This document shows positions 31,073-57,172 of a DNA stretch of 64,000 bases, in pieces. The stretch lies in sequence record PP408249.1; one strand, given 5' to 3'. The stretch's first letter is position 1. Each line of letters starts with the position of its first letter. Position numbers and translations under genes: made by a program. The notes under the pieces are model-generated. The model was given only the letters and a program-made list of their open reading frames with translations, was not told the origin of the DNA and searched no databases.

Positions 31073-32299
31073 ATGTCGAAAGAAACATGCTCTTATTGCA
31101 ATAAAGGCAAAGATGATGTGTCTAAGTTGTTTCGTAGCCCTGCTAAATATGGATCAAATGTATATATATGTGACCAGTGTGTAACTCAGTGCAACAATTT
31201 TTTAGAAACTGCCGAAACAAATGATCAGGAATCTAATAAATTAGAAATAAAATACACACCTGAAGAATTAAAGGAATTGCTAGATAAAGACATTGTAGGG
31301 CAAGATCACGCAAAAGAATTACTAAGTCTAGCGGTGTATAATCACTATAAACGGGTAAACTATAACACCACTGAACACGATGTAGAGTTATCTAAATCTA
31401 ACATAATGCTACTGGGACCCTCAGGTAGCGGTAAGACATTTTTAATATCTAGTATATCTAAATTGTTAAACATACCTTTTGTTTCTGTAGATTCTACTTC
31501 GCTAACAGAGGCAGGATATGTCGGCGATCATGTAGAGACTATATTTACTAGATTAATCGCAGAAGCAAATGGTGACATAGAACTAGCGCAACGTGGAATC
31601 GTATTTATAGATGAAATAGATAAGAAGCGTTCTAAAAAAGGAACAAATTCTGCAGGATCTGATGTTTCCGGCGAAGGCGTCCAACAGTCTTTACTTCGGG
31701 TGCTAGAAGGAACAACGATTAAATTAGAACTAAATTCTAACAGTATGTTTAGTCCTAGACAGGAAATTATGTTTGACACAACTAACGTTTTGTTTATAGT
31801 TGGCGGCGCATTTATAGGATTAGATGCAGTAATAAATAAAAGACTTAGTTCTACTAAATCTCAAATGGGATTTGGTTCCGAAGCTGGTAAACCCATAGAA
31901 GGTAGTTTATTCTATGTAGAACCGGAAGATTTGTATACATACGGTTTTATAAGAGAATTTGTAGGAAGATTTCCTGTTCTTATTGCGTTTCATGATGTAA
32001 CAGAGACTATGCTTCGTCGAATTCTAGTAGAGCCTAAAAGTTCTATACTTAAACAATATCAAACTATGTTTAAATTAGATAACATTGAATTAGAATTCGA
32101 TGAAGATTTTATAAAATCTGTTGCTACTACAGCGTTTAATAGGAAAACAGGCGCTCGTGGTTTAAGAACTATTTTAGAAAAAGAACTATCTAGTATAGCA
32201 TATAGATTGCCTTCTATAAGACGAGAAGGGTTTAGCAAGATTATTATACACGAACTAGGAAAACATAATTTCATAAAAGGGCAAAATGAAGACATTTAA
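31073..32299 (+). CDS. clpX: ClpX AAA+ unfoldase
   Basis: CSYC...CDQC zinc-binding domain, GPSGSGKT, GYVG, DEIDK, DVSGEGVQQSLL, MGF loop, GARGLR. Confidence 0.95.
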   Translation: MSKETCSYCNKGKDDVSKLFRSPAKYGSNVYICDQCVTQCNNFLETAETNDQESNKLEIKYTPEELKELLDKDIVGQDHAKELLSLAVYNHYKRVNYNTTEHDVELSKSNIMLLGPSGSGKTFLISSISKLLNIPFVSVDSTSLTEAGYVGDHVETIFTRLIAEANGDIELAQRGIVFIDEIDKKRSKKGTNSAGSDVSGEGVQQSLLRVLEGTTIKLELNSNSMFSPRQEIMFDTTNVLFIVGGAFIGLDAVINKRLSSTKSQMGFGSEAGKPIEGSLFYVEPEDLYTYGFIREFVGRFPVLIAFHDVTETMLRRILVEPKSSILKQYQTMFKLDNIELEFDEDFIKSVATTAFNRKTGARGLRTILEKELSSIAYRLPSIRREGFSKIIIHELGKHNFIKGQNEDI

Positions 32300-32492
32300 T
32301 ATAATTACTGGTCTTACTGTAGAAGTAAGACACGATAACTTTAACCAAGCACTTAGAACTTTTACTAAAAAGGTTCAAAATTCAGGAAAATTAAAAGAAG
32401 TTCGAGAACGCGAATTCTATGAAAAGCCTTCTGTAAAAAAGACAAAAGCTAAAAAAGCAGCAATTCAACGCCAGAAAAAGAAAAAAATATAA
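32286..32492 (+). CDS. rpsU: ribosomal protein bS21
   Basis: VEVRHDNFNQALRTFTKKV...EVREREFYEKPSVKK..KKAA..R. Confidence 0.92.
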   Translation: MKTFNIITGLTVEVRHDNFNQALRTFTKKVQNSGKLKEVREREFYEKPSVKKTKAKKAAIQRQKKKKI

Positions 32493-32494
32493 TA

Positions 32495-32830
32495 ATGGAT
32501 CTTTGCAGGATTTTAAATAATGAACTTATGTTTTGCAGAAATCGTAGGAATAAACTCTATTATAGCTTACGGCAATTGGATAAAGTTGACATCCCTGCAG
32601 ATCCTGCAGATTCTTTACTTATTTCCAGCATAAAAATGGATATAGAACAGCTCCAATCGTATAAAGATGCTATATCCGAATGCAGTAAACTTGAACAACG
32701 TATAATCTGTATAGATAAAACTATGCAGTATATCCGTCGGTATTGCAATCATAAGTTTGTGTATCACAATACTAATTATCATACAAATACAGATGCAGAA
32801 AAATGCATTTATTGCGGATTAATAATTTAA
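32495..32830 (+). CDS. hypothetical protein
   Basis: 111 aa, C-terminal CxH...CxxC. Confidence 0.55.
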   Translation: MDLCRILNNELMFCRNRRNKLYYSLRQLDKVDIPADPADSLLISSIKMDIEQLQSYKDAISECSKLEQRIICIDKTMQYIRRYCNHKFVYHNTNYHTNTDAEKCIYCGLII

Positions 32831-32831
32831 T

Positions 32832-33302
32832 ATGGCATATTTTTCAACTAAGAGATTTGGACCTATTTCCACTGGCCATCGTCAATGGAAAGATACGGGT
32901 CATTGCAGTAGAATACACGGCTATGGAAGAACAGTGAAGATTGTTTTTTCTGCTACTACATTAGATGATAAAATGTGGGTAGTAGATTTTGGTGGATTGA
33001 AAGATTTTAGGAAATGGTTGGAAGAACAATGGGATCATAATGTTTTAGTTGCATCTGATGATCCCAAGTTAAATATCCTTAAACAAATGGAACAAGAAGG
33101 TCTAGTTAAGTTAAATATAATGGATGTTAAAAAAGGTCATGGTCCCGGAATAGAAGGTTCATGTAAGCATCTGTTTGACTATTTAAATCCCATTATAGAA
33201 AAACATTCTGGCGGAAGATGTTGGGTCCATAGTATAGAAATATGGGAACACGAAAACAATTCTGCTATATATGAAACGTATAAGTCAACATTTAAAAGAT
33301 AA
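32832..33302 (+). CDS. second QueD/PTPS-like T-fold protein (HGY type)
   Basis: GHRQW...CSRIHGY, WVVDFGGLK, WDHNVLV, EHENNSA. Confidence 0.8.
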   Translation: MAYFSTKRFGPISTGHRQWKDTGHCSRIHGYGRTVKIVFSATTLDDKMWVVDFGGLKDFRKWLEEQWDHNVLVASDDPKLNILKQMEQEGLVKLNIMDVKKGHGPGIEGSCKHLFDYLNPIIEKHSGGRCWVHSIEIWEHENNSAIYETYKSTFKR

Positions 33303-33385
33303 ATAACATTAGTATTCCACGAGGAATACTATACAACGAGTGCCATATTGGGCTCACACTATATCTTGCGTAAAGGAGATTAAAA
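33298..33385 (+). promoter_or_regulatory. late promoter plus structured 5' UTR (ROSE-like thermometer candidate) of hsp20
   Basis: GATAAATA 33298; hairpin 33310-33331; weak hairpin 33338-33355; ATCTTGC...AGGAGAT pairing over the SD. Confidence 0.45.
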
Positions 33386-33817
33386 ATGCAAAAACATGTT
33401 ATAATGTCATCTAACCTAGCTAATTATAGATATGCACTAGGTGCAACTGATTTACTTAATACTATTACTAATGAACTTAGTAGCCAGAAGTTTCCTCCCC
33501 ATAATTTGATAAAGAATGCAGACGGTAGCTATTGTCTTGAATTAGCTCTTGCCGGTTATGATAAATCCGAGCTAGATGTTTATGTAGATAGCAGAGAACG
33601 ACTGTTAGTAATAGAAACAAAACCGGAACGAATTTTTAAAACTGAAGTAGAATACGAACACAAAGGTATTTCTAGTAAAGATTTTTCTGTCAAATTCAGG
33701 CTTGTAGACGATCTTATAAATATATCTTCGTGCGGTATGAAAAATGGCATTCTAACAATAAAAATTCAACCGCCAAGTCCCGCAGAATCACAACGAAAAG
33801 TAATTGATATAGAATAA
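33386..33817 (+). CDS. small heat shock protein (Hsp20/IbpA-like)
   Basis: FPPHNL, LELALAGY, EHKGIS, NGILTI. Confidence 0.9.
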   Translation: MQKHVIMSSNLANYRYALGATDLLNTITNELSSQKFPPHNLIKNADGSYCLELALAGYDKSELDVYVDSRERLLVIETKPERIFKTEVEYEHKGISSKDFSVKFRLVDDLINISSCGMKNGILTIKIQPPSPAESQRKVIDIE

Positions 33818-33824
33818 TGTTTAC

Positions 33825-33856
33825 AAATAAAAAGCTGGTATTCCAGCTTTTTATTT
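33825..33856 (+). terminator. bidirectional intrinsic terminator
   Basis: AAATAAAAAGCTGG-TATT-CCAGCTTTTTATTT. Confidence 0.8.
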
Positions 33857-33867
33857 TGCTATATAAC

Positions 33868-33895
33868 TTGACGACACTGTTTAAACATATATAAT
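33868..33895 (+). promoter_or_regulatory. sigma70-like promoter for clpS
   Basis: TTGACG-16-TATAAT. Confidence 0.6.
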
Positions 33896-33931
33896 AATGT
33901 GTATCAATTACGATCAACTTGGGATTTAAAA

Positions 33932-34234
33932 ATGACTGTAAAGGTAGCTAATAAAGTTGAAACTTCGTCTACTGTATTTCAACCTAAGAAATATAATGTA
34001 GTTTTCCACAACGATAACAAAACCACTATGGAATTTGTTATGCAATTGTTAGTGTATATATATGACTACGATGCATCTAGCGCATACAATACAATGATGG
34101 AAGTGCATGAACGCGGCGCAAAGATTGTAGGCAGCTATACAAAAGAAATTGCAGAATCGAAACAGTCTAAATCTGTTCAACTTGCTATTAACAACGGTTA
34201 TCCCGATTTTAAAGTAACTGTAGAAGAATCGTAA
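33932..34234 (+). CDS. clpS: ClpS N-degron adaptor
   Basis: YNVVFHNDNKTTMEFV, EVHERG, YTKEIAE; ATG 33932. Confidence 0.92.
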   Translation: MTVKVANKVETSSTVFQPKKYNVVFHNDNKTTMEFVMQLLVYIYDYDASSAYNTMMEVHERGAKIVGSYTKEIAESKQSKSVQLAINNGYPDFKVTVEES

Positions 34235-34246
34235 TACAGCAAAAAC

Positions 34247-34266
34247 GGGGGTAGACACCTACCCCC
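34247..34266. terminator. GC-rich hairpin (U tract on the minus strand)
   Basis: GGGGGTAG-ACAC-CTACCCCC preceded by AAAAAC. Confidence 0.5.
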
Positions 34267-34308
34267 TTCCCTATTATAATAAATAAAGCATATAGGGATA
34301 TAAGAATT

Positions 34309-34857
34309 ATGAATGATTCCATAAAGAAATACATATCTATTGCAGAAGCTGCATCGTCCGTAAAGAAAATTCCTATCCCGTATTCCGTAAGTAGTCTTAG
34401 TCCTACTTTCTCTAAAGATTTAGTAGAACTACATTACGGAACATTATATTCTAATTACATATCTTCAGTAAACAAAGACCCCAGTAATAAATTTTCATTT
34501 GCAGGTGCATACTTGCACGGGATTTATTTTAGTCAATTTACTGATTCTCAAAAAAGATATTCTCCTTCCGGGATATTGTTAAAAGATATAAAATCTAAAT
34601 TTACTTCATTTTCTAAATTTAAAAATGAGGTTATATCTGCATGCATGGATGTTCATGGTTCTGGATGGATTTATGTTTCTAATACCCTTGTAATAAAGGA
34701 AATCCCAAATCATGAAGTAAGAGACGATATATTCTTACTTATTGATTGTTGGGAGCATGCATATATGCTCGATTATAAAGCAGACAAGAAGTCATACTAC
34801 GAGAATATATGGAATATATTTAATTGGGAATATCTGGAGGGTATGTATTCTCAATAA
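34309..34857 (+). CDS. Fe/Mn superoxide dismutase-like protein
   Basis: PYS..SLSP, LHY, LHGIYF, HGSGW, DCWEHAY (four metal ligands present). Confidence 0.85.
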   Translation: MNDSIKKYISIAEAASSVKKIPIPYSVSSLSPTFSKDLVELHYGTLYSNYISSVNKDPSNKFSFAGAYLHGIYFSQFTDSQKRYSPSGILLKDIKSKFTSFSKFKNEVISACMDVHGSGWIYVSNTLVIKEIPNHEVRDDIFLLIDCWEHAYMLDYKADKKSYYENIWNIFNWEYLEGMYSQ

Positions 34858-34876
34858 ATAACTTCGGTGAATACTT

Positions 34877-35161
34877 ATGAGAACTAAAAAGCATTGGGAT
34901 GAATGCCTCTTTTCTTTATCTTATGAAACTGCACAACACATGGCATTTGAATTAAAGGAATTTGCCAAGCAAGCAGGATTTAATCCAAACGGTATTAAAG
35001 TATTGTCGAAAAAACAAATTCATAAATATGTAAAAGCTGATGCAGCTATTATGTGGGGCGAAGGTCCAGAGTGTTGGGCTAATTCGTTATTGTTTAAAGA
35101 TTTATTAGGAGTATACGTATCTACCTATAAGGGTAACACAATTCTATTTCATGACAGGTAA
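34877..35161 (+). CDS. hypothetical protein
   Basis: 94 aa; AATAAATA at 34853. Confidence 0.6.
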   Translation: MRTKKHWDECLFSLSYETAQHMAFELKEFAKQAGFNPNGIKVLSKKQIHKYVKADAAIMWGEGPECWANSLLFKDLLGVYVSTYKGNTILFHDR

Positions 35162-35170
35162 TGCAAATAA

Positions 35171-35464
35171 ATGATAGATATACACACTATTGGAAAAGAT
35201 TACACAGTAATCAATAAAAGAAATGGTGTATCTGTAACAGTTAGTGTGGTATTTTATAAAGATATTTTACGCAATATAAAACCATATTCTATAACTCAAC
35301 CTATAGACCAATATGTAATTTATGTTTGTGAACAAATTAAACCAACTAAACCATATCACTGGCATACTAATTATTCGGAAACTATTAACTTAGAACATTT
35401 AATAAAAGAAACATTACAAAATAATAAACAATTATTAATAATACAAGATTTATATACAGACTGA
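35171..35464 (+). CDS. hypothetical protein
   Basis: 97 aa ORF. Confidence 0.5.
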   Translation: MIDIHTIGKDYTVINKRNGVSVTVSVVFYKDILRNIKPYSITQPIDQYVIYVCEQIKPTKPYHWHTNYSETINLEHLIKETLQNNKQLLIIQDLYTD

Positions 35465-35531
35465 TATGGATAGCTTTTGCAACAAGAAGCTTGAAGATCG
35501 ACACAAACGCATGACGTAATAAGGATTATAA

Positions 35532-35759
35532 ATGAAAACATTTGATTTTACTTTTGGAGTATATAGAGCTAAACAGTGTGAATGGAAAGGAAATTCTAAA
35601 ACACAATGCGGAGCAAAACCTATAGAAGGAAAAGCATATTGTTTAGAACACTTTAAAAAGGCATATGTTAATATTTCTGAAGAAATGTTAGATAAACAAA
35701 CAGAAGCACAGTTAAAGAAATTAGAAAAAGAAATGCCTGTGGTAATCGAAGAAGAGTAA
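35532..35759 (+). CDS. small zinc-binding protein
   Basis: CEW...CGA...YCLEH; AAGGA SD. Confidence 0.6.
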   Translation: MKTFDFTFGVYRAKQCEWKGNSKTQCGAKPIEGKAYCLEHFKKAYVNISEEMLDKQTEAQLKKLEKEMPVVIEEE

Positions 35760-35790
35760 AAACAATCCCCGCAATTGCGGGGATTGTTTT
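35759..35790. terminator. perfect 32-bp palindrome / bidirectional terminator
   Basis: AAAACAATCCCCGCAA|TTGCGGGGATTGTTTT. Confidence 0.8.
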
Positions 35791-35804
35791 ATAAGGAGAT
35801 AAAA

Positions 35805-36449
35805 TTGGAACTTAAAACAGATGAACAGAAATCTATAATAGGAACATTTGCAACTTTAATGTTAACTAGAATATTTGCAGCCGCCGGTGCATATTTAGCA
35901 TTAACTATGCCAATTCTTAATATGAATTTACTTGTGTGTATATTTTCATATTTTGCTATAATGTTTATTATAGATTGTATTAGAACAAATGTGTATGTGT
36001 CTATTGTAGGGAGTGTATTTTTATTATTTTGGCAAGGAATAACATTAGGGAATGGATTAACTGCGTTACTGGGGGAAGTAGCGCCATTATTAGTTTTAGT
36101 TATGTTTACTATAAGTTCGTTTTTATATATGTTTCTTTGTGCAAACGCAATTATGTCAAAAAACATTTTTAGTTTCGCGTCGTCATTTAATGTTTCTATA
36201 GCAATGACTTTGCTTGTGACCATAGTAATGTCTATACTATTAGATCTATCAGTCAGTTATTGTATAGGCAGTATGATAATAAACGTGATTAATTGCGTGG
36301 TAATACTCAAAACATTAGAAGATTGTATAAACGAAAAATGTGAAAATATATCTATGCAAAAACTATCTACAACTGTAGTATTATTTTGGTACGATACAAT
36401 AATGGAGTCTATAGAGAAACTTTTAAAACTATTTACATATAAGCGGTAA
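35805..36449 (+). CDS. multi-pass membrane protein, Bax inhibitor-1/YccA-like
   Basis: TTG 35805 after AAGGAG; about 7 hydrophobic segments over about 215 aa; adjacent to ftsH. Confidence 0.5.
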   Translation: MELKTDEQKSIIGTFATLMLTRIFAAAGAYLALTMPILNMNLLVCIFSYFAIMFIIDCIRTNVYVSIVGSVFLLFWQGITLGNGLTALLGEVAPLLVLVMFTISSFLYMFLCANAIMSKNIFSFASSFNVSIAMTLLVTIVMSILLDLSVSYCIGSMIINVINCVVILKTLEDCINEKCENISMQKLSTTVVLFWYDTIMESIEKLLKLFTYKR

Positions 36450-36460
36450 ACAGTTATATT
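36432..36460 (+). promoter_or_regulatory. sigma70-like promoter for ftsH
   Basis: TTTACA-17-TATATT. Confidence 0.5.
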
Positions 36461-36489
36461 ACACACATAACCCCTTATAGGATCAAATA

Positions 36490-38220
36490 ATGCAACATAT
36501 TGTTAAGTTCATAAAAAATAACAGATTTATTATTTTATTTCTTGTAATATGCATAACTGGATTTGCGTTAACGATTAATTACAAGCCGACTAGTGTGTCT
36601 ATAAACACCTTTTTATCAGACGCATCGAGCGGTAAAATAATTAGTGTTAAATTAAAAGAAGATGGACAAACACTACAGTATGTTACTAACACATCAGACA
36701 GAAGAAAAGTAACATTCCCCGGAGATACCAGTAAATTAATAGAATCATTTCTTAAAGCAGGTGTTCCTGTAGTAACTGAAGAACCTTCTACCCCTAGTCC
36801 ATTCCTTACTAGTTTGGTGTCTGGACTTATAGTAATGTTAGTATTTTTAATTTTAATGGTATTCGTTTTGAAGCGAATGGGTCCTGGTTCTTCATTAGAT
36901 GCAAAAAGTAAATCCAAACTTCGCAAGATAGAACCAAAAGACATTGAAGTAACGTTTAACGATGTAGCTGGTCATACTCACGAAATAAATGAAGTAAAAG
37001 AGTTAGTTGATTTTATTGCTCATCGAACTAAGTATTCTAGCATGGGAATAGATGTGCCTCGTGGAATTCTAATGCACGGCAGTCCGGGCGTCGGGAAAAC
37101 ACTTTTAGCAAAGGCAATGGCAAAAGAGGCAAATGTTAATTTTTTCTATGTTGCTGGATCTGAGTTTAATGATACATTTGTCGGTGTAGGTGCAAACCGT
37201 GTAACAGATATGTTTAAAAAAGCAAAGGAAGCTGCGCCGTGCATTATTTTCATAGACGAAATTGATGCACTTGCACAACAACGTTCTACTAAAATATCTA
37301 ATGGGTCAGACCAAACACTCAATCAGTTATTAGTAGAAATGGATGGAATGCAAGATAACGATGGTATTACAATTCTTGCAGCTACTAATAGACTAGATAT
37401 ATTAGACCCGGCTGTTATTCGTCCTAAACGATTTGACAGAATTGTTCAACTAAGTTTACCTGATGTGGGGATTAGACAGAAGATTTTAGAAATAAATGCA
37501 AATGGAAAAACATTTGAAGACAATGTAGATTTTTCAGTAATAGCAAAAGGAACTCCGGGATTCTCTGGTGCTGAGTTAGCTAAACTAGTCAATGAGGCTG
37601 CAATCTATGCAGTAAGGTCTGGGCAAACTGTAATTACCCAGGAGCATGTAGAACGAGCAAAAGATAAGGTGTTAATGGGTGAAAATTCGACAAAGAAATA
37701 TACCCAAGAAGAATTGCTTCGTACTGCATATCATGAAGCCGGTCATGCAATATCGGGTGTAATTTACAAATCTAATGATAACTTGCATAAAGTATCTATC
37801 ATTCCTCGAGGTCTAGCACTAGGTGTAACTGTATTTCTTCCTAACGAAGAGCCTTCTGTTAGCAAAGAGCAGCTCATGAATAAATTAGTTACGTTAATGG
37901 CAGGCCGCGCAGCAGAAGAACTCATATACGGTGAATCTGCAATATCCACTGGCGCTAGTTCAGATATAAAGAGAGCAACCGAACTTGCAGTATACATGAC
38001 TACATCGTGTGGTTTCGGTAGTATAGGACCGGTTGCGACATCGACCCTGTCTAGTTTGCAATCTAGTGCAGAACAAGATGCAGCAATTCTAGTAAAAGAT
38101 GCGTACAATAAGGCCATAACATTACTTTCGGATAAAAAGGCTGAATTAAAACTTGTAGCAGACTTGTTAATGGAAAAAGAAACAATAGATTGTGCAGAAG
38201 TAGAACAAGTTCTTGCATAA
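36490..38220 (+). CDS. ftsH: FtsH membrane AAA+ metalloprotease
   Basis: Two N-terminal TM segments, GSPGVGKT, FVGVG, DEID, TNR...RPKRFDR, HEAGH, GASSDI. Confidence 0.95.
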   Translation: MQHIVKFIKNNRFIILFLVICITGFALTINYKPTSVSINTFLSDASSGKIISVKLKEDGQTLQYVTNTSDRRKVTFPGDTSKLIESFLKAGVPVVTEEPSTPSPFLTSLVSGLIVMLVFLILMVFVLKRMGPGSSLDAKSKSKLRKIEPKDIEVTFNDVAGHTHEINEVKELVDFIAHRTKYSSMGIDVPRGILMHGSPGVGKTLLAKAMAKEANVNFFYVAGSEFNDTFVGVGANRVTDMFKKAKEAAPCIIFIDEIDALAQQRSTKISNGSDQTLNQLLVEMDGMQDNDGITILAATNRLDILDPAVIRPKRFDRIVQLSLPDVGIRQKILEINANGKTFEDNVDFSVIAKGTPGFSGAELAKLVNEAAIYAVRSGQTVITQEHVERAKDKVLMGENSTKKYTQEELLRTAYHEAGHAISGVIYKSNDNLHKVSIIPRGLALGVTVFLPNEEPSVSKEQLMNKLVTLMAGRAAEELIYGESAISTGASSDIKRATELAVYMTTSCGFGSIGPVATSTLSSLQSSAEQDAAILVKDAYNKAITLLSDKKAELKLVADLLMEKETIDCAEVEQVLA

Positions 38221-38247
38221 TATTAAGTAATTAAATAAGGCACTATT

Positions 38248-39618: not shown

Positions 39619-39627
39619 GGATATTTT

Positions 39628-39789
39628 ATGATAAATGTAGGCGACGATGTTATTATTAAAACCGAATTTGGCGAGACATGCGGCATTGTTATAAAATTTA
39701 TATCTAATAAAACTATTGCTATAGTAGAATTAGAAGACGGTAACGAAATAGAAATAGGCAAAGGCGACTTAGAGTTGAGTAATAAATAA
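39628..39789 (+). CDS. small SH3/KOW-like protein (53 aa, not in ORF track)
   Basis: AAGGA SD; MINVGDDVIIKTEFGETCGIVIKF...; fills the gap exactly. Confidence 0.55.
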   Translation: MINVGDDVIIKTEFGETCGIVIKFISNKTIAIVELEDGNEIEIGKGDLELSNK

Positions 39790-46137: not shown

Positions 46138-46398
46138 ATGAAAGTATTAGTCACGGAAGACTCAACAATAATACCACTAAACACAATTGCTGAAGTTAAG
46201 TACCAAAAATCCACAGAAGAGTATGTAGTTTCTTTTATATCTGGAAAAATTAGAATAGAAATTCTAACAAAATATGGGCGTACTCATATAGTAAATTTAA
46301 GGGATCAATCGAATATAGATGCATCATTTGCTACTGCTAGTGATGAAGTTATTTATAAAAAATTTCTAGATTCGTGGATTTTGTCGCTGAAACCTTAG
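46138..46398 (+). CDS. hypothetical protein
   Basis: ATG 46138 after AAGGG. Confidence 0.55.
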   Translation: MKVLVTEDSTIIPLNTIAEVKYQKSTEEYVVSFISGKIRIEILTKYGRTHIVNLRDQSNIDASFATASDEVIYKKFLDSWILSLKP

Positions 46399-48154: not shown

Positions 48155-48862
48155 ATGTTTGCTGACGTACAAGGGTTTTATTCTTTTAAAAGAAAATTTA
48201 AAACACACGTTCTTACTTCTGTATTGAAAGAAACTGAATGGGAAATTATAATTGGATTCGTTCCTGCAAAGGATGCAAGCAACGGAGAAGATTTAATTGA
48301 TTTTGAAGTTCAAAAAAATATAATAGATTACTGGATTTCTAATTACGTAGAAGGCAGTATTATCGTCGATATGAGCGATACTAGAATTTCTATGTTGTAT
48401 GATATAGCAGAAAATAACATAATAGGTGTTCCTAGTTTTCCTAAAGATTTAAAAACGCTAGCAATGGTTTTTCATTCTAAGATTTCATCTATAACAGATG
48501 GCAAGCTATCTATAGGTGACATTATTATATCAGACGATAGTAATTTTAGTTACACATTCGGAAAACATGTAGATGAAATATACGATCTTCCTACAATAGA
48601 CGATATGTTTCCTAACGAAGATGAAAAACCCATATGGGACGTGCCGTGGTGGGATAGGGTCGATGTAGATACATTTGATTATGTTCCTGATTTAGAAAAT
48701 CGTACATTAGAAGAAGTACAAATGTCTGTTTGTACAAGACATGTGTTAAATGATATTAACGATAAGTTCGAAGCTGCAATAAAAGAAGAATTAGGTATAA
48801 ATGTAGAAACTGAAGACAATGTTATAGACATAGTTGATGTTTTAAATGAACGACAAATATAA
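48155..48862 (+). CDS. hypothetical protein, possible degenerate QueD-like T-fold
   Basis: LIDF...WISNYVEGSIIVD...PSFPKDLKTLA aligns by eye with QueD VTDF...FIDDVIDHKFIID...FVPTAENLA; no His ligands. Confidence 0.45.
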   Translation: MFADVQGFYSFKRKFKTHVLTSVLKETEWEIIIGFVPAKDASNGEDLIDFEVQKNIIDYWISNYVEGSIIVDMSDTRISMLYDIAENNIIGVPSFPKDLKTLAMVFHSKISSITDGKLSIGDIIISDDSNFSYTFGKHVDEIYDLPTIDDMFPNEDEKPIWDVPWWDRVDVDTFDYVPDLENRTLEEVQMSVCTRHVLNDINDKFEAAIKEELGINVETEDNVIDIVDVLNERQI

Positions 48863-49355
48863 TAGAAAAGAAATAACTATATCAACAGGCATAAATATCC
48901 TTTTGCAAGGGAACCAGCTGGGAGATCCACTCTTTGTTGACAACGAAGACATAAACAAGTATAATATGCACGTAGAACAAGTGTTAGGGTTGCATAAACT
49001 TAATACGACGAAACACTTAACTTGTTCTGTTGATGAATTTCATGAAAAAATGTCTTCAGAATGGTTTATGCCACCGGAATTTAAAAATATAGATATAGAT
49101 TCTTTTATATTAAATTTATGTGACACTGATGCACAAAAAGAAAGAGTATTAATGGAACTGAAACTCTTTCAAGAACGCGGTTTATACAATATGCTAAGAT
49201 TTATGATATATTTTGTATCATATATGAGGGAAAATTGCCTTATCTGGGGTGTGGGTCGCGGGTCTAGTGTTGCGTCTTATGTATTATTTTTAATAGGCGT
49301 GCATAAAGTAGATTCACTAAAATATAATTTAGATATAAAAGAATTTCTAAAATAA
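48846..49355 (+). CDS. family C (DnaE-like) DNA polymerase, N-terminal palm/thumb half
   Basis: ERVLMEL, IWGVGRGSSVASYVLFLIGVHKVDSLKYNLDIKEFLK matches DnaE [33 protein letters not shown]. Confidence 0.85.
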   Translation: MNDKYNRKEITISTGINILLQGNQLGDPLFVDNEDINKYNMHVEQVLGLHKLNTTKHLTCSVDEFHEKMSSEWFMPPEFKNIDIDSFILNLCDTDAQKERVLMELKLFQERGLYNMLRFMIYFVSYMRENCLIWGVGRGSSVASYVLFLIGVHKVDSLKYNLDIKEFLK

Positions 49356-49367
49356 AAGGAGTTAATT

Positions 49368-49709: not shown

Positions 49710-49710
49710 A

Positions 49711-50037: not shown

Positions 50038-50050
50038 GGCATAATATCTA

Positions 50051-50980: not shown

Positions 50981-50981
50981 T

Positions 50982-51344
50982 ATGGTTTCATCTAAACGAG
51001 CATACATTGTACTGACTCATCGATATTCACTAAAGAAATACACTAAAGACCAATGGGAAGTAACAGAAGAATGTGCATTTCTTAATAAATTGCCGAATTC
51101 TGTATTGCTTCAATCGTCTGTTATTTTAGATGCAAAGGCAGAAACTGTATATAAAAATAGAACAGAAGGCAATGCGTCATATAACGAAATTGCAAAATAT
51201 GTTGCTGAAAAATATCCCATTCAGTTTGGGCAATTTTATAGCCTTTTAGGTAAAGAGAATCCGTTTGCAATAAAAGAATCAAATACTGCCAACGAAGAAA
51301 CTACAGAACCCGAAATTAGCGAGACAGAATCTAGTGAGCAATAA
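50982..51344 (+). CDS. hypothetical protein
   Basis: 120 aa ORF. Confidence 0.65.
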   Translation: MVSSKRAYIVLTHRYSLKKYTKDQWEVTEECAFLNKLPNSVLLQSSVILDAKAETVYKNRTEGNASYNEIAKYVAEKYPIQFGQFYSLLGKENPFAIKESNTANEETTEPEISETESSEQ

Positions 51345-51930
51345 TCTTATACTAGTAGATGTTGATGGTGTACTTTTAAAATGGTATCCCGAATTTTTAA
51401 ATTTTTTGAAATCTAAAAACCTTATACCGCAAGATAGTAATATTGTTGCATCTACGTATGATATGGCATCTGACTTAAAATTAGATAAAGATGCTATTAA
51501 TGAACTTATATTAGAGTTTAATAATTCTAGTGTAATGCGATATCTGTCTCCCATGGATAACGCAGTAGATGCTATTAATAAATTAAAAGATAAAGGATTT
51601 AGTTTTGTTGCCATTAGTAGCTTAAGTGGGAAAGAACATGCACTAGATAACAGAAAATACAATATCTCTGAAGTATTCGGCAAAGAAGTGTTTGATGAAG
51701 TCCACTGCATAGAGCCCGGACTAAGTAAAGAAGAATTGTTAAAGAAATATTCTAAAGATGCAATTCTCTGGATAGAAGACCATCCGGGTAACGCAGAATT
51801 AGGTCATAAACTCGGTATAAGAACTGTTCTTGCACTTCATCCTCATAATACAAATGTAAAAACTTCTAAAAATATTATAAGGATTGATATAGACAAACTT
51901 TGGACCGAAATAGAAAATATTGTAAACTAA
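51334..51930 (+). CDS. HAD-family 5'(3')-deoxyribonucleotidase-like
   Basis: DVDGVL, SK, WIEDH. Confidence 0.82.
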   Translation: MSNNLILVDVDGVLLKWYPEFLNFLKSKNLIPQDSNIVASTYDMASDLKLDKDAINELILEFNNSSVMRYLSPMDNAVDAINKLKDKGFSFVAISSLSGKEHALDNRKYNISEVFGKEVFDEVHCIEPGLSKEELLKKYSKDAILWIEDHPGNAELGHKLGIRTVLALHPHNTNVKTSKNIIRIDIDKLWTEIENIVN

Positions 51931-51932
51931 CA

Positions 51933-51966
51933 AAAATAAAACCCTAACTAGTTAGGGTTTTATTTT
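51933..51966. terminator. perfect 34-bp palindrome / terminator
   Basis: AAAATAAAACCCTAACT|AGTTAGGGTTTTATTTT. Confidence 0.8.
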
Positions 51967-51984
51967 GGGTTTAATAATTAGACA

Positions 51985-52014
51985 AAATAAAAGGGGCATA
52001 TGCCCCTTTTATTT
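51985..52014. terminator. perfect 30-bp palindrome / terminator for phoH
   Basis: AAATAAAAGGGGCAT|ATGCCCCTTTTATTT. Confidence 0.8.
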
Positions 52015-52786
52015 AATTAATGTCCTTATACATTTCTAAGATATCTTCAATTAGTGGATGACGTTTAATATCCTTTGAAGTAAATTTAATGACACTTATG
52101 TGTTTATTGCCGCCTGCTCTATCGAGTCTTTCTAAGAAATCTTTTAGTCCATTTACTTCGAAGCCCCGATCGTGTTGCTCTATATCGCCAGTAACTATCA
52201 TTTTACAATTCTCACCTATTCTTGAAAAAAGCATTTTAGACATGTTAGGCGTTGTATTCTGTATTTCGTCTGCTAATATAACACAATTTTTAAATGTTCT
52301 GCCTCTCATATATGCAAGGGGAGCAATTTCTATAATTTCTTCCATAAGCATTTGTTCTATTTCGACAGGGGAATAATATTCTTTAAACACATCCATTATT
52401 GGTATTACCCAAGGAGCCATTTTATCTATTAGCGTGCCTGGCAAAAAACCGTGTTCTTCGTCTACTGATACTGCTGGCCTAGTAATTACAATCTTATCGC
52501 ATTTACCTTCTTTATATGCTTTAATTGCATACATAGATGCTAGTAATGTTTTTCCAGATCCTGCTGGACCTGTTGCAAATACAATGTGCTGTGTATCGTC
52601 TTCTAATGCGTTTACATATTCTTCTTGTGCTAAGCTTTTTGGTATTAGCTTAACTTCTTGTTTTCTTTGTATAGATCTTACTTGTTTAGTATTAGTAGAC
52701 GGCTGAACAACATTGTTAGTTACTAGATGAAAGGTACTGTTAGGACCTTCGCTTGCTCGAGCTTTGCGCTTATCACGTTGTTTCAA
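52013..52786 (-). CDS. phoH: PhoH-like ATPase
   Basis: GPAGSGKT, ITRPAV, GFLPG, LAYMRGRT, DEIQN, GDIEQHD, RHPL. Confidence 0.95.
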   Translation of the reverse strand: MKQRDKRKARASEGPNSTFHLVTNNVVQPSTNTKQVRSIQRKQEVKLIPKSLAQEEYVNALEDDTQHIVFATGPAGSGKTLLASMYAIKAYKEGKCDKIVITRPAVSVDEEHGFLPGTLIDKMAPWVIPIMDVFKEYYSPVEIEQMLMEEIIEIAPLAYMRGRTFKNCVILADEIQNTTPNMSKMLFSRIGENCKMIVTGDIEQHDRGFEVNGLKDFLERLDRAGGNKHISVIKFTSKDIKRHPLIEDILEMYKDIN

Positions 52787-52950
52787 AAGTATGACTCCTG
52801 GTTAAAATCTTATTTTTAGTGTGATAATATGTATAAAGACCTAATCTTTACATTGTTATTTATGTGTGTTATTATACATTAAGACTTAAGAAAAATCTAC
52901 ATCTAATTTTAAATATTAAGATTAATGTGTAGATAAATATAATATATTAT

Positions 52951-53484
52951 TTGGATAGTAAAATGAACAAACACAATGCAGATACTGCTAGAGAGAATTT
53001 AGTTCAAATAGCAGGAAATAATAAAGTATTAGATATGCTCATAGAATTAGAAAAAACATTAGATAACTGTAATGTTTTTTCTTATGCAAATTGGAATAAA
53101 GGAGAATTAGTTGCCGGACCCTTTATTTCTAGATATTGGGTTACTACTACCTGGATGTACAATGAAAAAGATATGCCAGATCCCGATGCAGGATTGCGTT
53201 TACTAAAATACGGTTGCAAAGTAAAGTACGAAAGGGATGTTTTTTTAGAACCAAAAAAAGTAACAGGTAGACCTGACTACGAAAACCCATCCACTAAACA
53301 AGCAAAAATAGAAGAATTGCCTATTTGGTTAGTGACAATAACTATGCCTAGGAAATTTATAGACGAAGCAATAATAGATGGCATGCAGGATTTCTCTAAC
53401 GTAGATGATATAGATCCTAGTGCAATAGCTGATGTAGAAGCAGCAGGCGAAAACGGAATAAACGATGTAGATGGAAATCTATAA
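52951..53484 (+). CDS. hypothetical protein
   Basis: GATAAATA at 52932; start TTG 52951 or ATG 52963. Confidence 0.7.
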   Translation: MDSKMNKHNADTARENLVQIAGNNKVLDMLIELEKTLDNCNVFSYANWNKGELVAGPFISRYWVTTTWMYNEKDMPDPDAGLRLLKYGCKVKYERDVFLEPKKVTGRPDYENPSTKQAKIEELPIWLVTITMPRKFIDEAIIDGMQDFSNVDDIDPSAIADVEAAGENGINDVDGNL

Positions 53485-53513
53485 AATTATTCCATATTAT
53501 AAAGGGGTATATA

Positions 53514-54215
53514 ATGTTAGCTAGACACTCATTAAAAGGAACCGTATTACCTATAATTTCGGTGGATGAGTATATGCCTAAATCTGGAACACAGGAAGAA
53601 GTTATAGTCATTGCATTCTATACCATTGACGAAGACCCTGCGTTTGATTTAGACGATTTTATAGAAAAAAGTTTTATAGAAGTATTAGATGTCGATGTAA
53701 GTCCCAATCCCGACGAAAACGGAAATTATTTAGTATTTGTAGAATTAAAAAGAAAAGCAGGCTTCTTTGAAAAATTTTACAAGATTATAAAAGATGTAGA
53801 AAATGTGTCTGGAAAGCAAGACTGGTTAGTTAAAGCATATCTTTGTAACGAATTACTACCATACGATGACGAAAGACTATTAGATTATATAATATTACTA
53901 GATGACGAAGAAGCATCAATAACAGAAAGTGTAATATCTATGCTTACTGACAGTGATATATCTTCTGCTCACATAGATGATTCTAGAATATACATATCTA
54001 ATTCTCATAGAACAGTAAGTTTTGAGCCATTGTATATAGGCGAAAAAGCATTTAATAGTTTAAAACTAAATGAATGTGCTATAGAACTATCTAATGTAGA
54101 TAGTAATGTTGCTTTATTATCGGCATTTTTAGGTAAAAAATGGGAAGTATATAAACTAAACGAATATATAATACTTCAACACCAATCTAAGCAACCTATT
54201 ATAGCCAAATTATAA
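53514..54215 (+). CDS. hypothetical protein
   Basis: AGGGG SD, 233 aa. Confidence 0.7.
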
Positions 54216-54219
54216 TCAA

Positions 54220-54246
54220 AAAGCACTTATTTTCGATAAGTGCTTT
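54220..54246. terminator. hairpin/terminator
   Basis: AAAGCACTTAT-TTTCG-ATAAGTGCTTT. Confidence 0.55.
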
Positions 54247-54253
54247 AACTATC

Positions 54254-54943
54254 ATGAAGAATTGGCAAACAATCCTTGGCGTATCTGCTAATCCCACAGA
54301 AAAACAGATAAAGACTGCATACAGAAAACTTGCATCAAAATATCATCCTGACAGAAATAAAGATAAAGATGCAGAAAACATGTTTAAACAAGTAAGGGAA
54401 GCATACGAATATGCAATAAAATGGATTTCTATTAAAACAGAACAATACACAGATACAGTATATATTCCATTAAAATACCAAAATAAAGGCGGCAAATTCA
54501 AGACATCTAATCATAAATTTATTATAGAAATTCCGCCACATTTCCCTCATAATTCACAAAAAATAATAATAGTAAACAATTCTATATTATTAGTTACTGT
54601 AATATTCATACATGATACATTTTCTATAGCTCAAAATGGCATAGATGTATATGCAACTATTTCTGTAGAAAGTCTCGACATAATTATGGGCACAGAAATA
54701 ATAGTTGAGCATCCGTACGGAAATAAGATAAAAGTAGGTATACCTACATCATTTGTATCTGGATCTAAAATACTAGTGAAGAATAAAGGTATTAAGAATA
54801 CATATACAGTAAACAATATTTTAGAAACCATAACAGGTCATTTGTATATAACTGTCAACATGTTCACAAAAGTTCGTTTGACTAAAAGCAGCGATACTAG
54901 TATACTACTAACGTACAAAGCAAAACCATACACAATCTCGTAA
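54254..54943 (+). CDS. DnaJ/CbpA-like J-domain co-chaperone
   Basis: [21 protein letters not shown] (HPD), C-terminal DnaJ_C-like region with GHLYI. Confidence 0.88.
54878..54906 (+). promoter_or_regulatory. sigma70 promoter for clpA inside the J-protein 3' end
   Basis: TTGACT-17-TATACT. Confidence 0.65.
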
Positions 54944-54952
54944 GGGGTACAC

Positions 54953-57172
54953 ATGGATAGCCAAAAGAAACTGAATACCGTACTTACTGAAGCAAAAAAA
55001 CTTGCAGTAAGTCACCAACACGAAGCCATTACTTCAGATCATGTATTGTATGTTTTATTAGGATACGACGAAGTAAAGGACTGTGTTAAAAACTGCAATG
55101 CAGACCCGGATCAATTAACTAAAGCAGTATCTAATTTCCTTGTTACCCAGTTGGGAAAATCCCGACACATAACTGATATGAATATCGATATCAGTCCCTC
55201 TCTTAGTCGCTGGTGCCAGCAATTGGCAACTAAAATTGCATTAGATCCTAACAAAGCAATGACGTATGTCGATATGCTCGATGCACTCATCAAAGACACC
55301 AGTTGCAATGCAAGCCAGCTTCTCGCGCACTACGGTGTTACTACTGCTGTAGTAACTGAAGCGAAGAAATCTGCAGAAGCAGAATCCCTCATAAAGTCGT
55401 TTACTCGCAATCTTAACGACGAAGTATCTGAGGGCAAAATTGATCCGGTTATCGGCCGGGAAACTGAACTAGAAGAAGTTATCGAAGCCCTCGCCCGCCG
55501 GCGAAAAAACAATTGCATTCTTACCGGCAAAGAAGGTGTGGGTAAGACAGCAATTGCTGAAGGGTTGGCGATGAAAATCGTCAACGGCGAGGTGCCCGAA
55601 GCAATTTCTGACAAACAAGTTATTTCACTCGATATCGGCGCGATGATGGCAGGCACTAAATATCGCGGCGAGTTCGAAGAGCGCATGAAAGCGCTGTTAG
55701 ACGAACTAAAAGCAATGAAAAATGCCATCGTCTTCATCGACGAAATACATATGATCATGGGCGCCGGTGCAAGTAATGGTTCGTCAGTAGACGCTGCTAA
55801 CCTGCTCAAGCCAGAATTGGCAAAAGGAACACTTCGTTGCATAGGCGCAACTACTTACGACGAATATAGTACACACTTTGAAAAAGATCGGGCATTAATG
55901 CGCCGGTTCCAAAAAGTGGATGTTCCGCCGCCTAGTGTAGGTGACACCAAAAAAATAGTTGCCGGACTAAAGCAATATTACGAAGAGTTCCATGGCGTCA
56001 AATACGACGTAGGGACTCTAGATCTAGCAGTCGATTTGACTGAACGATACATCAAAACTCGGCACCAGCCCGACAAATCAATCGATGCAATAGACCTGGT
56101 CGGCGCCAGAGCTAAATTAGCAGGGATTTCTACCATTACCGAGCGTATGGTCATAGAAACTGTAGCTAAACTAGCTCATATGCGTCCGGAAATGTTAGAT
56201 AACACCGAAAACGACACTATTGCTCGTCTAGAAGGTAACCTCAAACACGATGTGTTTGGGCAAGACGAAGCTATTAGCAAGCTCTGCGAAGCAGTAATGG
56301 TACACAAAGCAGGACTTCGAGATGCCAATAAGCCGATTGGTAACTTCTTATTAGTAGGTCCTACCGGTACTGGCAAAACGTTCTTGGCAAAAAAACTATC
56401 CCAACATATGGGTATTCCTTTGGTGCGGTTCGATATGTCTGAATACCAAGAACAGCATAGCGTCGCCCGGCTGCTCGGTGCGCCGCCCGGATATGTAGGG
56501 CACGGCGAAGGTGAAGCTGGCGCAGGGCAGTTAATCTCTGAGATTGAAAAAAATCCCAACTGCATCTTGTTGCTAGACGAAATCGAAAAAGCACACCCGA
56601 AGGTATTTAGTACGTTCCTTCAGGTAATGGATGACGCCCGACTAACTTCGTCAACTGGCAAAACTGTATTCTTTGGTAACGTTTTGCTACTAATGACATC
56701 TAACTCCGGCGCTGCTCAAGCTGCTAAAGCATCAATTGGATTTGGAAATAATTTTAACGACGGTGCAATAGATAGCGCAGTTACAAAAGGATTTGCGCCT
56801 GAATTCCGGAACAGGCTCGACGGCATTGTTAAGTTCTCGGCGCTCACTATCAACGAAATGTCTAAGATTGTAGACACTGAGTTTGCTAAAGTACAAGCAA
56901 GTGTACTAGAAAAAGGCGTATCGTTGATCCTTACCCAAGAAGCACGTCAAAAATTAGCAACAGATGGATATGATCCTAAGATGGGCGCCCGTCCGCTCGC
57001 GAGGCTGTTCCAAGAGAAAGTCAAGTTGCCGCTGTCAAAGCTGATGCTACTTGGCGATCTTAAAAATGGCGGTCACGCAGAAGTCAGGGTAGTAGCAGAC
57101 GAAGTTGTAGTTATACAAGCAATTGCCCCTGCTACTAAAGCTAAAAAGAAAATAGACCAAACTGTAGTTTAA
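54953..57172 (+). CDS. clpA: ClpA AAA+ unfoldase
   Basis: Clp N-domain; NBD1 GVGKT, KYRG, IDEIH; NBD2 GPTGTGKT, GYVG, LDEIEK; IGF loop; no ClpB/ClpC middle coiled coil. Confidence 0.92.
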   Translation: MDSQKKLNTVLTEAKKLAVSHQHEAITSDHVLYVLLGYDEVKDCVKNCNADPDQLTKAVSNFLVTQLGKSRHITDMNIDISPSLSRWCQQLATKIALDPNKAMTYVDMLDALIKDTSCNASQLLAHYGVTTAVVTEAKKSAEAESLIKSFTRNLNDEVSEGKIDPVIGRETELEEVIEALARRRKNNCILTGKEGVGKTAIAEGLAMKIVNGEVPEAISDKQVISLDIGAMMAGTKYRGEFEERMKALLDELKAMKNAIVFIDEIHMIMGAGASNGSSVDAANLLKPELAKGTLRCIGATTYDEYSTHFEKDRALMRRFQKVDVPPPSVGDTKKIVAGLKQYYEEFHGVKYDVGTLDLAVDLTERYIKTRHQPDKSIDAIDLVGARAKLAGISTITERMVIETVAKLAHMRPEMLDNTENDTIARLEGNLKHDVFGQDEAISKLCEAVMVHKAGLRDANKPIGNFLLVGPTGTGKTFLAKKLSQHMGIPLVRFDMSEYQEQHSVARLLGAPPGYVGHGEGEAGAGQLISEIEKNPNCILLLDEIEKAHPKVFSTFLQVMDDARLTSSTGKTVFFGNVLLLMTSNSGAAQAAKASIGFGNNFNDGAIDSAVTKGFAPEFRNRLDGIVKFSALTINEMSKIVDTEFAKVQASVLEKGVSLILTQEARQKLATDGYDPKMGARPLARLFQEKVKLPLSKLMLLGDLKNGGHAEVRVVADEVVVIQAIAPATKAKKKIDQTVV

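Follow-up and report, generated by a model that had tools for sequence, protein, structure and literature searches.

A conserved set of genes for ClpP, ClpX, ClpA and ClpS in Wroclawvirus jumbo phages of Pseudomonas aeruginosa and its putative role in protein turnover

Genes for the peptidase ClpP, the unfoldases ClpX and ClpA, and the adaptor ClpS lie between positions 31073 and 57172 of a 64,000-nucleotide stretch of sequence record PP408249.1, to which we refer as the window. These bounds run from the ClpX start to the ClpA stop, and all named genes are on the plus strand. The window is part of the 286-kb genome of phage vB_Pa-PAC2 (100% identity over a 24-kb slice; window base 1 corresponds to record base 124001), and ten further records of the genus match the same slice at 98.6-99.1%, including PA5oct, MIJ3, Paride, Ettore, Cassandra, Deifobo, Callisto, 30-2 and 30-3. 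All belong to the genus Wroclawvirus (Arenbergviridae), virulent jumbo myoviruses of P. aeruginosa with genomes of 284-288 kb, in line with the phage origin assumed in a first-pass annotation of the window that was made from the sequence alone. The PAC2 and MIJ3 records already label clpX, rpsU, ftsH, clpP, a “chaperonin”, dnaJ and clpA, with ftsH annotated alongside an “FtsH-interacting integral membrane protein”, whereas clpS is named in other Wroclawvirus records. The first-pass annotation had presented the set as an uncharacterised system. If this is taken to mean unnoticed, it does not hold: the genes are annotated in 11 GenBank records, and equivalent sets have been published for phage Atu_ph07 (PMC6102473) and in a survey of jumbo phages (PMC7824862). 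What lies here is a known kind of system in a known, annotated phage, and the evidence does not support an overlooked, near-complete one.

The Clp genes and their companions, initially described as scattered separate units, form three conserved small gene groups (Table 1). One comprises clpX, the ribosomal protein gene bS21, hsp20, clpS and the superoxide dismutase gene sod; the second a ligase gene, an exonuclease gene and clpP; and the third phoH, two virion protein genes, dnaJ, clpA, another virion protein gene and a tail-fibre gene.

Table 1 Features of the Clp region in window coordinates (aa, amino acids; ORF, open reading frame)
Feature	Position	Strand	Family matches and remarks
ClpX unfoldase, 408 aa	31073-32299	+	Pfam zf-C4_ClpX, AAA_2, ClpB_D2-small
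Ribosomal protein bS21	32286-32492	+	NCBIfam S21p, 52.6 bits (cut-off 28.95)
Hsp20/IbpB-like small heat-shock protein	33386-33817	+	Pfam HSP20, 40.6 bits (cut-off 20.8)
ClpS adaptor, 100 aa	33932-34234 (ORF opens at 33899)	+	Pfam ClpS, E 1e-21, 76.8 bits (cut-off 23)
Fe/Mn superoxide dismutase	34309-34857	+	Pfam Sod_Fe_C, Sod_Fe_N; conserved neighbour of clpS
Multi-pass membrane protein, weakly Bax1-I/YccA-like	35859-36449	+	Directly upstream of ftsH
FtsH membrane AAA+ zinc protease, 576 aa	36490-38220	+	Pfam FtsH_ext, AAA, AAA_lid_3, Peptidase_M41
ClpP peptidase with longer handle, 223 aa	41679-42350	+	Pfam CLP_protease, E 8e-60, 202 bits (cut-off 20.2)
Candidate GroES/T4 gp31-like co-chaperonin, 108 aa	49711-50037	+	Pfam Cpn10, 22.0 bits (cut-off 21.1)
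Virion structural protein	52963-53484	+	One of the PHROG 12928/13138 pair upstream of dnaJ
Virion structural protein	53514-54215	+	One of the PHROG 12928/13138 pair, directly upstream of dnaJ
J-domain protein, 229 aa	54254-54943	+	Pfam DnaJ, 62.8 bits; DnaJ_C, 30 bits (partial C-terminal domain)
ClpA double-ring unfoldase, 739 aa	54953-57172	+	Pfam Clp_N, two AAA modules, AAA_lid_9, D2-small
Small virion structural protein, directly 3' of clpA	57290-57724	+	PHROG 13657 and PHROG 14467 “virion structural protein”
Tail fibre, 6.7-kb gene	from 57738, exits window		Annotated in PAC2

ClpP aligns with bacterial ClpP over its length and retains the catalytic triad, with Ser112, His137 and Asp198 invariant in 31 aligned relatives. 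The stretch between His and Asp is 12 residues longer than in bacterial ClpP, distributed over three gaps (3+7+2), and 112 of the 120 closest relatives have exactly this His-Asp spacing. An AlphaFold2 model based on 31 relatives (predicted local distance difference test, pLDDT, 87.7) superimposes on solved ClpP structures with target-normalised template modelling (TM) scores of 0.89-0.92, and places the extra residues in loop 137-149 and the first turns of a 32-residue helix spanning 150-181. In bacterial ClpP, this handle region joins the two heptamers. From the position of the insertion in the model, we conjecture that the long handle might insulate the phage ClpP barrel from host ClpP rings. 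No published report of the longer handle, which is common to the clade, was found. ClpP stays under the NCBIfam equivalog cut-offs (NF001368, 236 bits vs 249; TIGR00493, 213 vs 308.6), a shortfall that fits the insertion together with the ~50% identity to bacterial enzymes. The protein is called “head maturation protease” in RefSeq NC_071039 as well as in the records of Paride, Ettore, Cassandra and Deifobo, a label that probably traces to PHROG 94. The head maturation model NF045542 gives 88.9 bits, below its cut-off of 120, and a separate T4-like module of prohead core/protease, scaffold and capsid genes lies elsewhere in the genome (see also PMC7318152); this label is therefore probably wrong.

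ClpX passes the NCBIfam equivalog cut-offs (456 bits vs 359; 416 vs 370.75). It was aligned with P. aeruginosa ClpX as seen in the host ClpP1/ClpP2-ClpX complex (PDB 9ndj_F). Four zinc-binding Cys, the GYVG pore loop and Walker A/B are present, and MGF takes the place of the host's IGF as docking tripeptide. In place of the RKH loop (host Arg229, Lys230, His231) the phage protein has Ser, Met and Ser, and Gly replaces the pore-2 Thr (host Thr200); both this Thr and the RKH loop are typical of proteobacterial ClpX rather than of the ClpX family at large. In Escherichia coli ClpX, the ssrA tag is recognized by pore-1 Tyr153/Val154, pore-2 Thr199/Val202 and RKH-loop Arg228/His230; mutation R228A alters the specificity of this enzyme, and human ClpX, which differs at two ssrA-reading positions, does not degrade ssrA-tagged proteins (PMC7652416). 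ClpX of marine relatives and of Salicola phage SCTP-2 has deletions of 5 and 10 residues at the RKH region, whereas Arg-Lys is kept in Atu_ph07 and the Sinorhizobium phage Phosso, and Arg-Lys-His in phage G. Loss of the ssrA-reading residues is therefore a trait of this branch, and because of it phage ClpX probably selects degrons other than the ssrA tag. We found no published report of this loss in the clade.

Aligned with E. coli ClpS structures, phage ClpS has identical residues at N34, D35, T38, M40, M62 and H66, which we take to form the N-degron pocket, and it also retains the residues aligned with E79 and K84, presumably contacts to the ClpA N-domain. Bacterial ClpS has the same pocket residues. 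Since this canonical pocket is kept, the phage adaptor probably recognizes the same degron class as that of the host. In bacteria the pocket is specific for Leu/Phe/Tyr/Trp, and ClpA docks on ClpP via IGL loops (PMC9663308). The ClpS relatives likewise have 100 aa, those from marine relatives having Phe where E. coli ClpS has M40. The NCBIfam equivalog cut-off is not reached (63.7 vs 143).

Among NCBIfam models, that of ClpA matches the double-ring unfoldase best (791 bits), ahead of ClpB (647) and also of ClpV, with scores under the equivalog cut-offs (TIGR02639, 791 bits vs 993; NF008263, 681 vs 1350). From D1 to its end the protein aligns continuously with E. coli ClpA and lacks a middle domain. 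KYRG and GYVG pore loops and two Walker A/B pairs are present, as is a docking loop with IGF in place of the IGL of E. coli ClpA. Where a phage ClpP is encoded the docking loops have been kept, the IGF tripeptide occurring in 109 of 119 ClpA relatives; ClpA of the Rak2-like Salmonella phage 7t3 has lost it. The N-domain matches Pfam Clp_N with 30 bits but reaches only 11.8 bits against E. coli ClpA, and its median identity across 114 relatives is 21.6% vs 55.9% in the rest of the protein. By this comparison the ClpA N-domain is fast-evolving, a feature for which we found no published report, and it is too divergent for the ClpS contact surface to be mapped onto it. The alignments thus bear out the motifs that the first-pass annotation had read in the four proteins: the intact triad of ClpP, the zinc-binding domain and MGF loop of ClpX, the N-domain, IGF loop and missing middle domain of ClpA, and the N-degron pocket residues of ClpS.

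We next consider how these genes are inherited. The closest ClpA relatives outside the genus are metagenomic proteins of up to 54% identity, and ClpA of isolated phages of other genera is 41.6-43.8% identical. Contigs encoding these ClpA relatives have phoH (minus strand) first, then two genes for products of ~200 and ~250 residues, a J-protein gene, clpA and finally the gene for a small Y05C-like product. For ClpP, the nearest relatives have 205 residues and 66-69% identity and come from contigs that reach 346 kb in length; they carry the same handle insertion, and their clpP follows ligase, RNase T and a minus-strand ORF in that order. Two independent contigs of marine or environmental origin, Logan SRR5007141_23751 (207 kb) and Tara Oceans ERZ907900 k127_1529133, reproduce the window order of clpX, bS21, hsp20, clpS, sod and two small ORFs, continue with ligase, RNase T, minus-strand ORF and clpP, and carry RtcB, GroEL and NAD-salvage genes further downstream. 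The uncultured contigs resemble the window in combining long-handle ClpP with RKH-less ClpX, although their ClpX is only 42% identical; unlike the window, they have neither FtsH nor a Bax1-I-like gene in the interval between sod and ligase, and they carry a GroEL that Wroclawvirus lacks. In one marine relative (L011), GroEL (Cpn60), the RNA ligase RtcB and a nicotinamide phosphoribosyltransferase are encoded near clpP (listed at 15912-17537, 13611-14837 and 20253-end, respectively). At least 566 IMG/VR viral contigs encode the long-handle type of ClpP.

Among isolates, several other jumbo phages carry comparable sets. Agrobacterium phage Atu_ph07, Sinorhizobium phage Phosso, AP-J-162 and SCTP-2 all encode ClpA, ClpX, ClpP and ClpS, and this group also shares dnaJ by clpA, a translation gene after clpX and phoH upstream of clpA; in SCTP-2, where phoH precedes clpA, the order clpX, bS21, clpS is found. 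Their sets are only 35-57% identical to that of the window. Seven Clp-family genes plus DnaJ have been reported for Atu_ph07 (PMC6102473) and six Clp-family genes for AP-J-162 (PMC11242549), and ClpP, ClpS, ClpA and ClpX were mapped in the jumbo-phage survey (PMC7824862). Atu_ph07 also has ClpB (PMC6102473), in contrast to the 11 Wroclawvirus records, in which there is one Hsp100 match each: a second Hsp100 or ClpB was discarded as a candidate, the ClpA tblastn search finding one place per Wroclawvirus genome. ClpP matches in Atu_ph07 and Phosso are ~10 residues shorter than the covered part of window ClpP, and judging from these match lengths, rather than from a direct alignment, the long handle is probably missing from both. 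Within the phage database, the four components are found together in Wroclawvirus, Atu_ph07, Phosso and SCTP-2. As to the count of complete sets proposed at first pass, the full set is rare among isolates, yet present in several lineages and neither unique nor new. “Acinetobacter phage MD-2021a” contains all parts but was not counted as a phage lineage, because this metagenomic record consists of several contigs and has clpP-clpX and clpS-clpA pairs arranged as in bacteria. The INPHARED-derived collection also includes bacterial contigs (Salmonella AGRM01000002 and AFYI01000007 are examples), as well as numerous short “phage” fragments that lack annotation and bear host-like clp, ftsH and groL; raw record counts consequently overstate the frequency of these genes in phages.

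Taken together, the Clp genes are an old, vertically inherited backbone of a wide giant-phage clade. Recent capture from the host was considered and dismissed in view of the low G+C content, the ~49% identity to host ClpP1 and a gene order common to distant phages; window G+C is 0.30-0.41, that of P. aeruginosa ~0.66. Within the window, G+C reaches 0.37-0.41 over dnaJ-clpA (54000-58000) vs 0.30-0.35 in most of the remainder. That the genes are decaying passengers without function is hardly credible. All Clp and FtsH proteins except ClpX do score under the curated NCBIfam cut-offs, as decay would have it, but the reading frames are intact, every catalytic residue is present, protein identity is at least 98.8% across the eleven isolate records, and the conservation of order and motifs over a deep clade already contradicts decay.

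The same breadth of conservation bears on the idea that the proteases have been re-aimed at specific host defence proteins, antitoxins or regulators, in counter-defence or host take-over. The lost ssrA-reading residues of ClpX point in this direction, as does the fast change of the ClpA N-domain, which would be expected under lineage-specific selection on substrate choice, and the jumbo-phage survey suggests that patchily distributed phage peptidases and ClpS may target host proteins (PMC7824862). However, no target, adaptor or degron is identifiable (neither PADLOC nor an anti-defence library was searched), the ClpS pocket is canonical, and the backbone is kept in phages of Pseudomonas, Agrobacterium, Sinorhizobium, Salicola and marine bacteria. 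A general function fits conservation across such different hosts better than host-specific counter-defence does, and we regard the latter as quite improbable. The suggestion that the machinery is re-specified accordingly keeps some support from ClpX and the ClpA N-domain, but none from ClpS.

Compared with ClpXP, ClpAP and ClpS of Gammaproteobacteria, the phage proteins have the same domain architectures, triad, Walker motifs, pore loops and docking loops. Bacterial ClpX and ClpA are strong matches to their phage counterparts, and bacterial ClpP is ~50% identical to phage ClpP at a target-normalised TM of ~0.9. Phage ClpP differs in its longer handle, and phage ClpX in lacking the RKH loop and pore-2 Thr of host ClpX. 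Gene arrangement differs, bacteria having clpP-clpX and clpS-clpA operons that the phage does not. This likeness raises the possibility that phage parts plug mainly into host partners and that the set is not autonomous, with phage ClpS re-aiming host ClpAP and phage ClpX or ClpA capping, or competing for, host ClpP1/ClpP2. Both docking tripeptides fit the generic pattern hydrophobic-Gly-Phe/Leu, the ClpS residues aligned with E79 and K84 (presumed contacts to the ClpA N-domain) are kept, phage ClpP is ~49% identical to host ClpP1 with, according to the model, the same fold, and the J-protein and GroES-like protein need host partners, no DnaK or GroEL being annotated. Phages with ClpS alone presumably use host ClpAP (PMC7824862). 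Set against this, the full set is conserved together in at least four isolate lineages and would be redundant if host parts sufficed, and the long ClpP handle at the ring-ring interface could block mixed barrels. We consider predominantly mixed machines possible but doubtful.

The genomic position of dnaJ-clpA points at least as strongly to yet another function, virion assembly. The two genes upstream of dnaJ match PHROG 12928 and 13138 “virion structural protein” (E 1e-31 and 4.5e-35) and are 37-52% identical to the neighbours in the same position in the uncultured relatives L006 and L008. The gene at 57290-57724 is a “structural protein” in the MIJ3 record and Phage_T4_Y05C-like in L008. The absence of long ORFs after 57724 is due to the tail-fibre gene, which runs out of the window. 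The J-protein itself has HPD at residue 31 and no zinc finger; CxxC is absent from it and from four relatives, so that it does not qualify as class A, which is marked by a Gly/Phe-rich region and a CxxCxGxG zinc finger, and its NCBIfam DnaJ score (88 bits) is far below the cut-off of 377. dnaJ lies directly upstream of clpA in Atu_ph07, L006 and L008, and one gene further upstream in Phosso. Counts of promoters and terminators around dnaJ-clpA were no better than in shuffled sequence, and no published report of dnaJ-clpA among virion genes was found.

From this layout, DnaJ-ClpA and the GroES/gp31-like protein could mainly serve virion assembly, in which they would fold, unfold or hand over huge structural proteins such as tail fibres and baseplate proteins, with ClpP-dependent degradation being secondary. 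The dnaJ-clpA pair lies between virion genes with the 6.7-kb tail-fibre gene next to it, an arrangement kept in uncultured relatives and in Atu_ph07. In phage 7t3 a ClpA-like gene is located among tail genes, and the loss of its docking tripeptide indicates a stand-alone unfoldase there. The GroES-like protein matches a PHROG family for head morphogenesis, and assembly roles for ClpA and ClpX were proposed in the survey (PMC7824862). On the other hand, ClpA of this clade retains its IGF docking loop, a phage ClpP and ClpS make sense for proteolysis, and ClpX, ClpS and ClpP are encoded among replication, nucleotide and stress genes, not structural ones. Virion assembly is a serious rival and is compatible with a role in protein turnover, but as the principal function it appears unlikely.

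In addition to the Clp proteins, the window encodes FtsH with HEAGH at residue 415, Walker A/B, an F-V-G pore loop and two N-terminal hydrophobic segments. It is ~60 residues shorter than bacterial FtsH and reaches 550.6 bits on TIGR01241, under the cut-off of 600. Its nearest relatives are two metagenomic proteins, followed by bacterial, mostly gammaproteobacterial, FtsH of 42-44% identity; in Atu_ph07, Phosso, AP-J-162 and SCTP-2 no tblastn match at or below 1e-40 was obtained. The neighbouring membrane protein is hydrophobic throughout and scores below the Pfam Bax1-I cut-off of 34.1 bits, both as a 224-aa ORF (21.2 bits) and in the annotated 196-aa form (15.7 bits), with no NCBIfam or PHROG match. 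An exhaustive search of 1.84 billion representatives returned a single relative, P0362, which reaches 32.9 bits on Bax1-I and is encoded directly upstream of a 575-aa FtsH. Given the bacterial kin of FtsH and this lone relative beside another ftsH, the pair looks like a separate, lineage-specific addition. No published report of the pair was found. FtsH is the only one of the proteins considered here that is discussed in the PA5oct, MIJ3 and Paride papers, and it is transcribed throughout PA5oct infection (PMC7318152).

The GroES-like candidate matches PHROG 931 “head morphogenesis” and PHROG 3188 “GroES”, but reaches 23.2 bits vs 128 in NCBIfam and shows only a weak N-terminal match to E. coli GroES in PDB sequences (E 0.31); a single-sequence structure model (pLDDT 51) was too poor to use. 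Like T4 gp31, the candidate would be a small all-beta GroES-like protein without an encoded GroEL, although its similarity to gp31 is marginal and no match named gp31 appeared in the PDB sequence search. DnaK/Hsp70, GrpE, GroEL, ClpB, Lon and HslUV are not annotated in the whole MIJ3 record or in the PAC2 window. A phage GroEL was sought with a marine Cpn60 query, which gave 211 phage-record matches; the 11 Wroclawvirus records were not among them, Pseudomonas being absent from the ten commonest organism names listed, the last of which accounts for 3 records. As no Hsp70 or GroEL is annotated, both the J-protein and the GroES-like candidate would have to rely on partners from the host. The accessory genes named at first pass thus stand for FtsH, Hsp20 and the J-protein, whereas the YccA-like protein is sub-threshold in Pfam and GroES marginal in every library, and the near-complete proteostasis network proposed there was overstated, with Hsp70, GroEL, ClpB and Lon all unannotated.

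The gene following clpX deserves separate mention. bS21 begins 14 nucleotides (nt) before the clpX stop, and an identical 14-nt overlap is found in the marine relatives L011 and L012 (bS21 at 1718-1969 and 1715-1966; at 2726-2986 in L021). In SCTP-2 the gene after clpX is again bS21, and in Atu_ph07 and Phosso it is that of translation initiation factor IF3. The unfoldase gene is persistently coupled to a translation gene, for which we found no published report. Another translation factor of the clade is a small IF1/eIF-1A-like protein encoded by uncultured relatives (L008, 4992-5207; L013, 213-431), whose gene in L008 sits just upstream of dnaJ-clpA.

We propose, with a probability of roughly 0.55, that the set gives the phage ClpXP and ClpAPS proteases of the canonical kind, which need no host subunits and serve to turn over proteins in the infected cell. 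A phage-made, clade-specific ClpP barrel, with its 12-residue longer handle at the ring-ring equator, would be capped either by phage ClpX through its MGF loop or by phage ClpA through its IGF loop. Phage ClpS would bind the ClpA N-domain and deliver substrates that begin with Leu, Phe, Tyr or Trp, like its bacterial counterparts, whereas ClpX would pick non-ssrA degrons, perhaps via its zinc-binding domain. FtsH and its Bax1-I-like partner may add turnover of membrane proteins, in this genus only, and the J-protein, the GroES-like protein and the small heat-shock protein may steer host DnaK and GroEL. The autonomous machine envisaged in the first-pass annotation is plausible on this basis, peptidase, both unfoldases and adaptor having intact catalytic, pore-loop and docking motifs.

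The least certain step is what such proteases would be for. The Clp set may supply bulk proteolytic and folding capacity that is independent of collapsing host expression, to be used for quality control during massive synthesis of large proteins and for recycling host protein to amino acids, with oligopeptidase A finishing the peptides released by ClpP; the benefit would perhaps be greatest in starved, non-growing hosts. This role in bulk turnover and amino-acid recycling is a conjecture drawn from four observations: oligopeptidase A is encoded in the MIJ3 genome, host transcripts are depleted during PA5oct infection (PMC7318152), FtsH is transcribed throughout infection, and Paride replicates in dormant cells, where RpoS and (p)ppGpp are still needed (PMC10761892).

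Several points weigh against canonical, self-sufficient proteases. FtsH alone among these proteins has reported transcription, and the Clp activities are predicted from sequence; in the PhageExpressionAtlas text, mentions of clp are limited to host clpX/clpP of Staphylococcus aureus. ClpA, ClpP, FtsH and ClpS are under the NCBIfam equivalog cut-offs, which only ClpX and bS21 reach, and are therefore divergent members of their families. Phage parts may pair with host ClpP1/ClpP2 and ClpA as well as with each other, the dnaJ-clpA pair is placed among virion genes beside the tail fibre, and the link to dormancy is circumstantial. Finally, ClpX was found in only 8/80 and ClpS in only 12/80 of the 10-kb flanks of the 80 best IMG/VR ClpP genes, and ClpX, ClpS and ClpP together in 6/52 informative loci, figures that refer to 10-kb flanks and not to whole genomes; the full window-like order therefore belongs to a subclade.

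A bolder version of turnover would have an insulated, virus-specific Clp system with its own degrons strip the host proteome together with oligopeptidase A, and so aid Paride-type growth in dormancy. Long-handle ClpP would then be unable to form mixed barrels with host ClpP1/ClpP2, and the RKH-less ClpX and divergent ClpA N-domain would read degrons that host enzymes do not. We give this version little credence.

Wroclawvirus phages are candidates for therapy, and Paride grows in dormant, antibiotic-tolerant cells. With ATP-dependent proteases, an adaptor and co-chaperones of their own, such phages might depend less on a host that is shut down or starved. Because at least 566 contigs encode long-handle ClpP and the gene order recurs in marine contigs, virus-encoded Clp proteolysis is probably widespread in giant phages from marine and sewage sources. 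RKH-less ClpX and long-handle ClpP represent natural variants of well-studied machines, and the Bax1-I-like/FtsH pair and clpX-bS21 are conserved units that are possibly worth a look.

Further observations concern neighbouring genes. Hsp20 matches PHROG 432 Hsp20 (E 3e-25) and has a C-terminal I-x-I motif, the protein ending in I-D-I-E; hsp20 adjoins clpS in marine relatives as well, and sod occupies a matching position in L011 and L012. clpX is flanked by genes for GTP cyclohydrolase I and two 6-pyruvoyl-tetrahydropterin/QueD-type synthases (29780-31055 and 32832-33302), which belong to a deazaguanine DNA-modification pathway noted for PA5oct (PMC7824862); marine relatives lack the second QueD-type synthase gene between bS21 and hsp20. 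Between sod and ftsH, a 94-residue ORF (34877-35161) without a PHROG family weakly matches the metallopeptidase family Tox-MPTase3 of Pfam (E 3.5e-4, 21.2 bits, under the cut-off of 25). Scans of the window for tRNAs and Rfam families gave no match. The label “polyubiquitin-like protein” in the PAC2 record (46138-46398) was not adopted, as neither a Pfam family nor a PDB sequence match was obtained. For a 169-residue ORF at 48846-49355, the match to the Pfam model DNA_pol3_alpha (260 positions; “Bacterial DNA polymerase III alpha NTPase domain”) is confined to model positions 21-94, and the ORF is a fragment or a stand-alone piece.

Outside the window, the MIJ3 record (LR588166.1) encodes oligopeptidase A (PrlC) at 20219-22240, as well as a BCS1-like AAA+ ATPase and a DksA homologue (166203-167630 and 182308-182538, in the order of listing). 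The DksA homologue is of note given that Paride depends on (p)ppGpp signalling by the host when it infects dormant cells.

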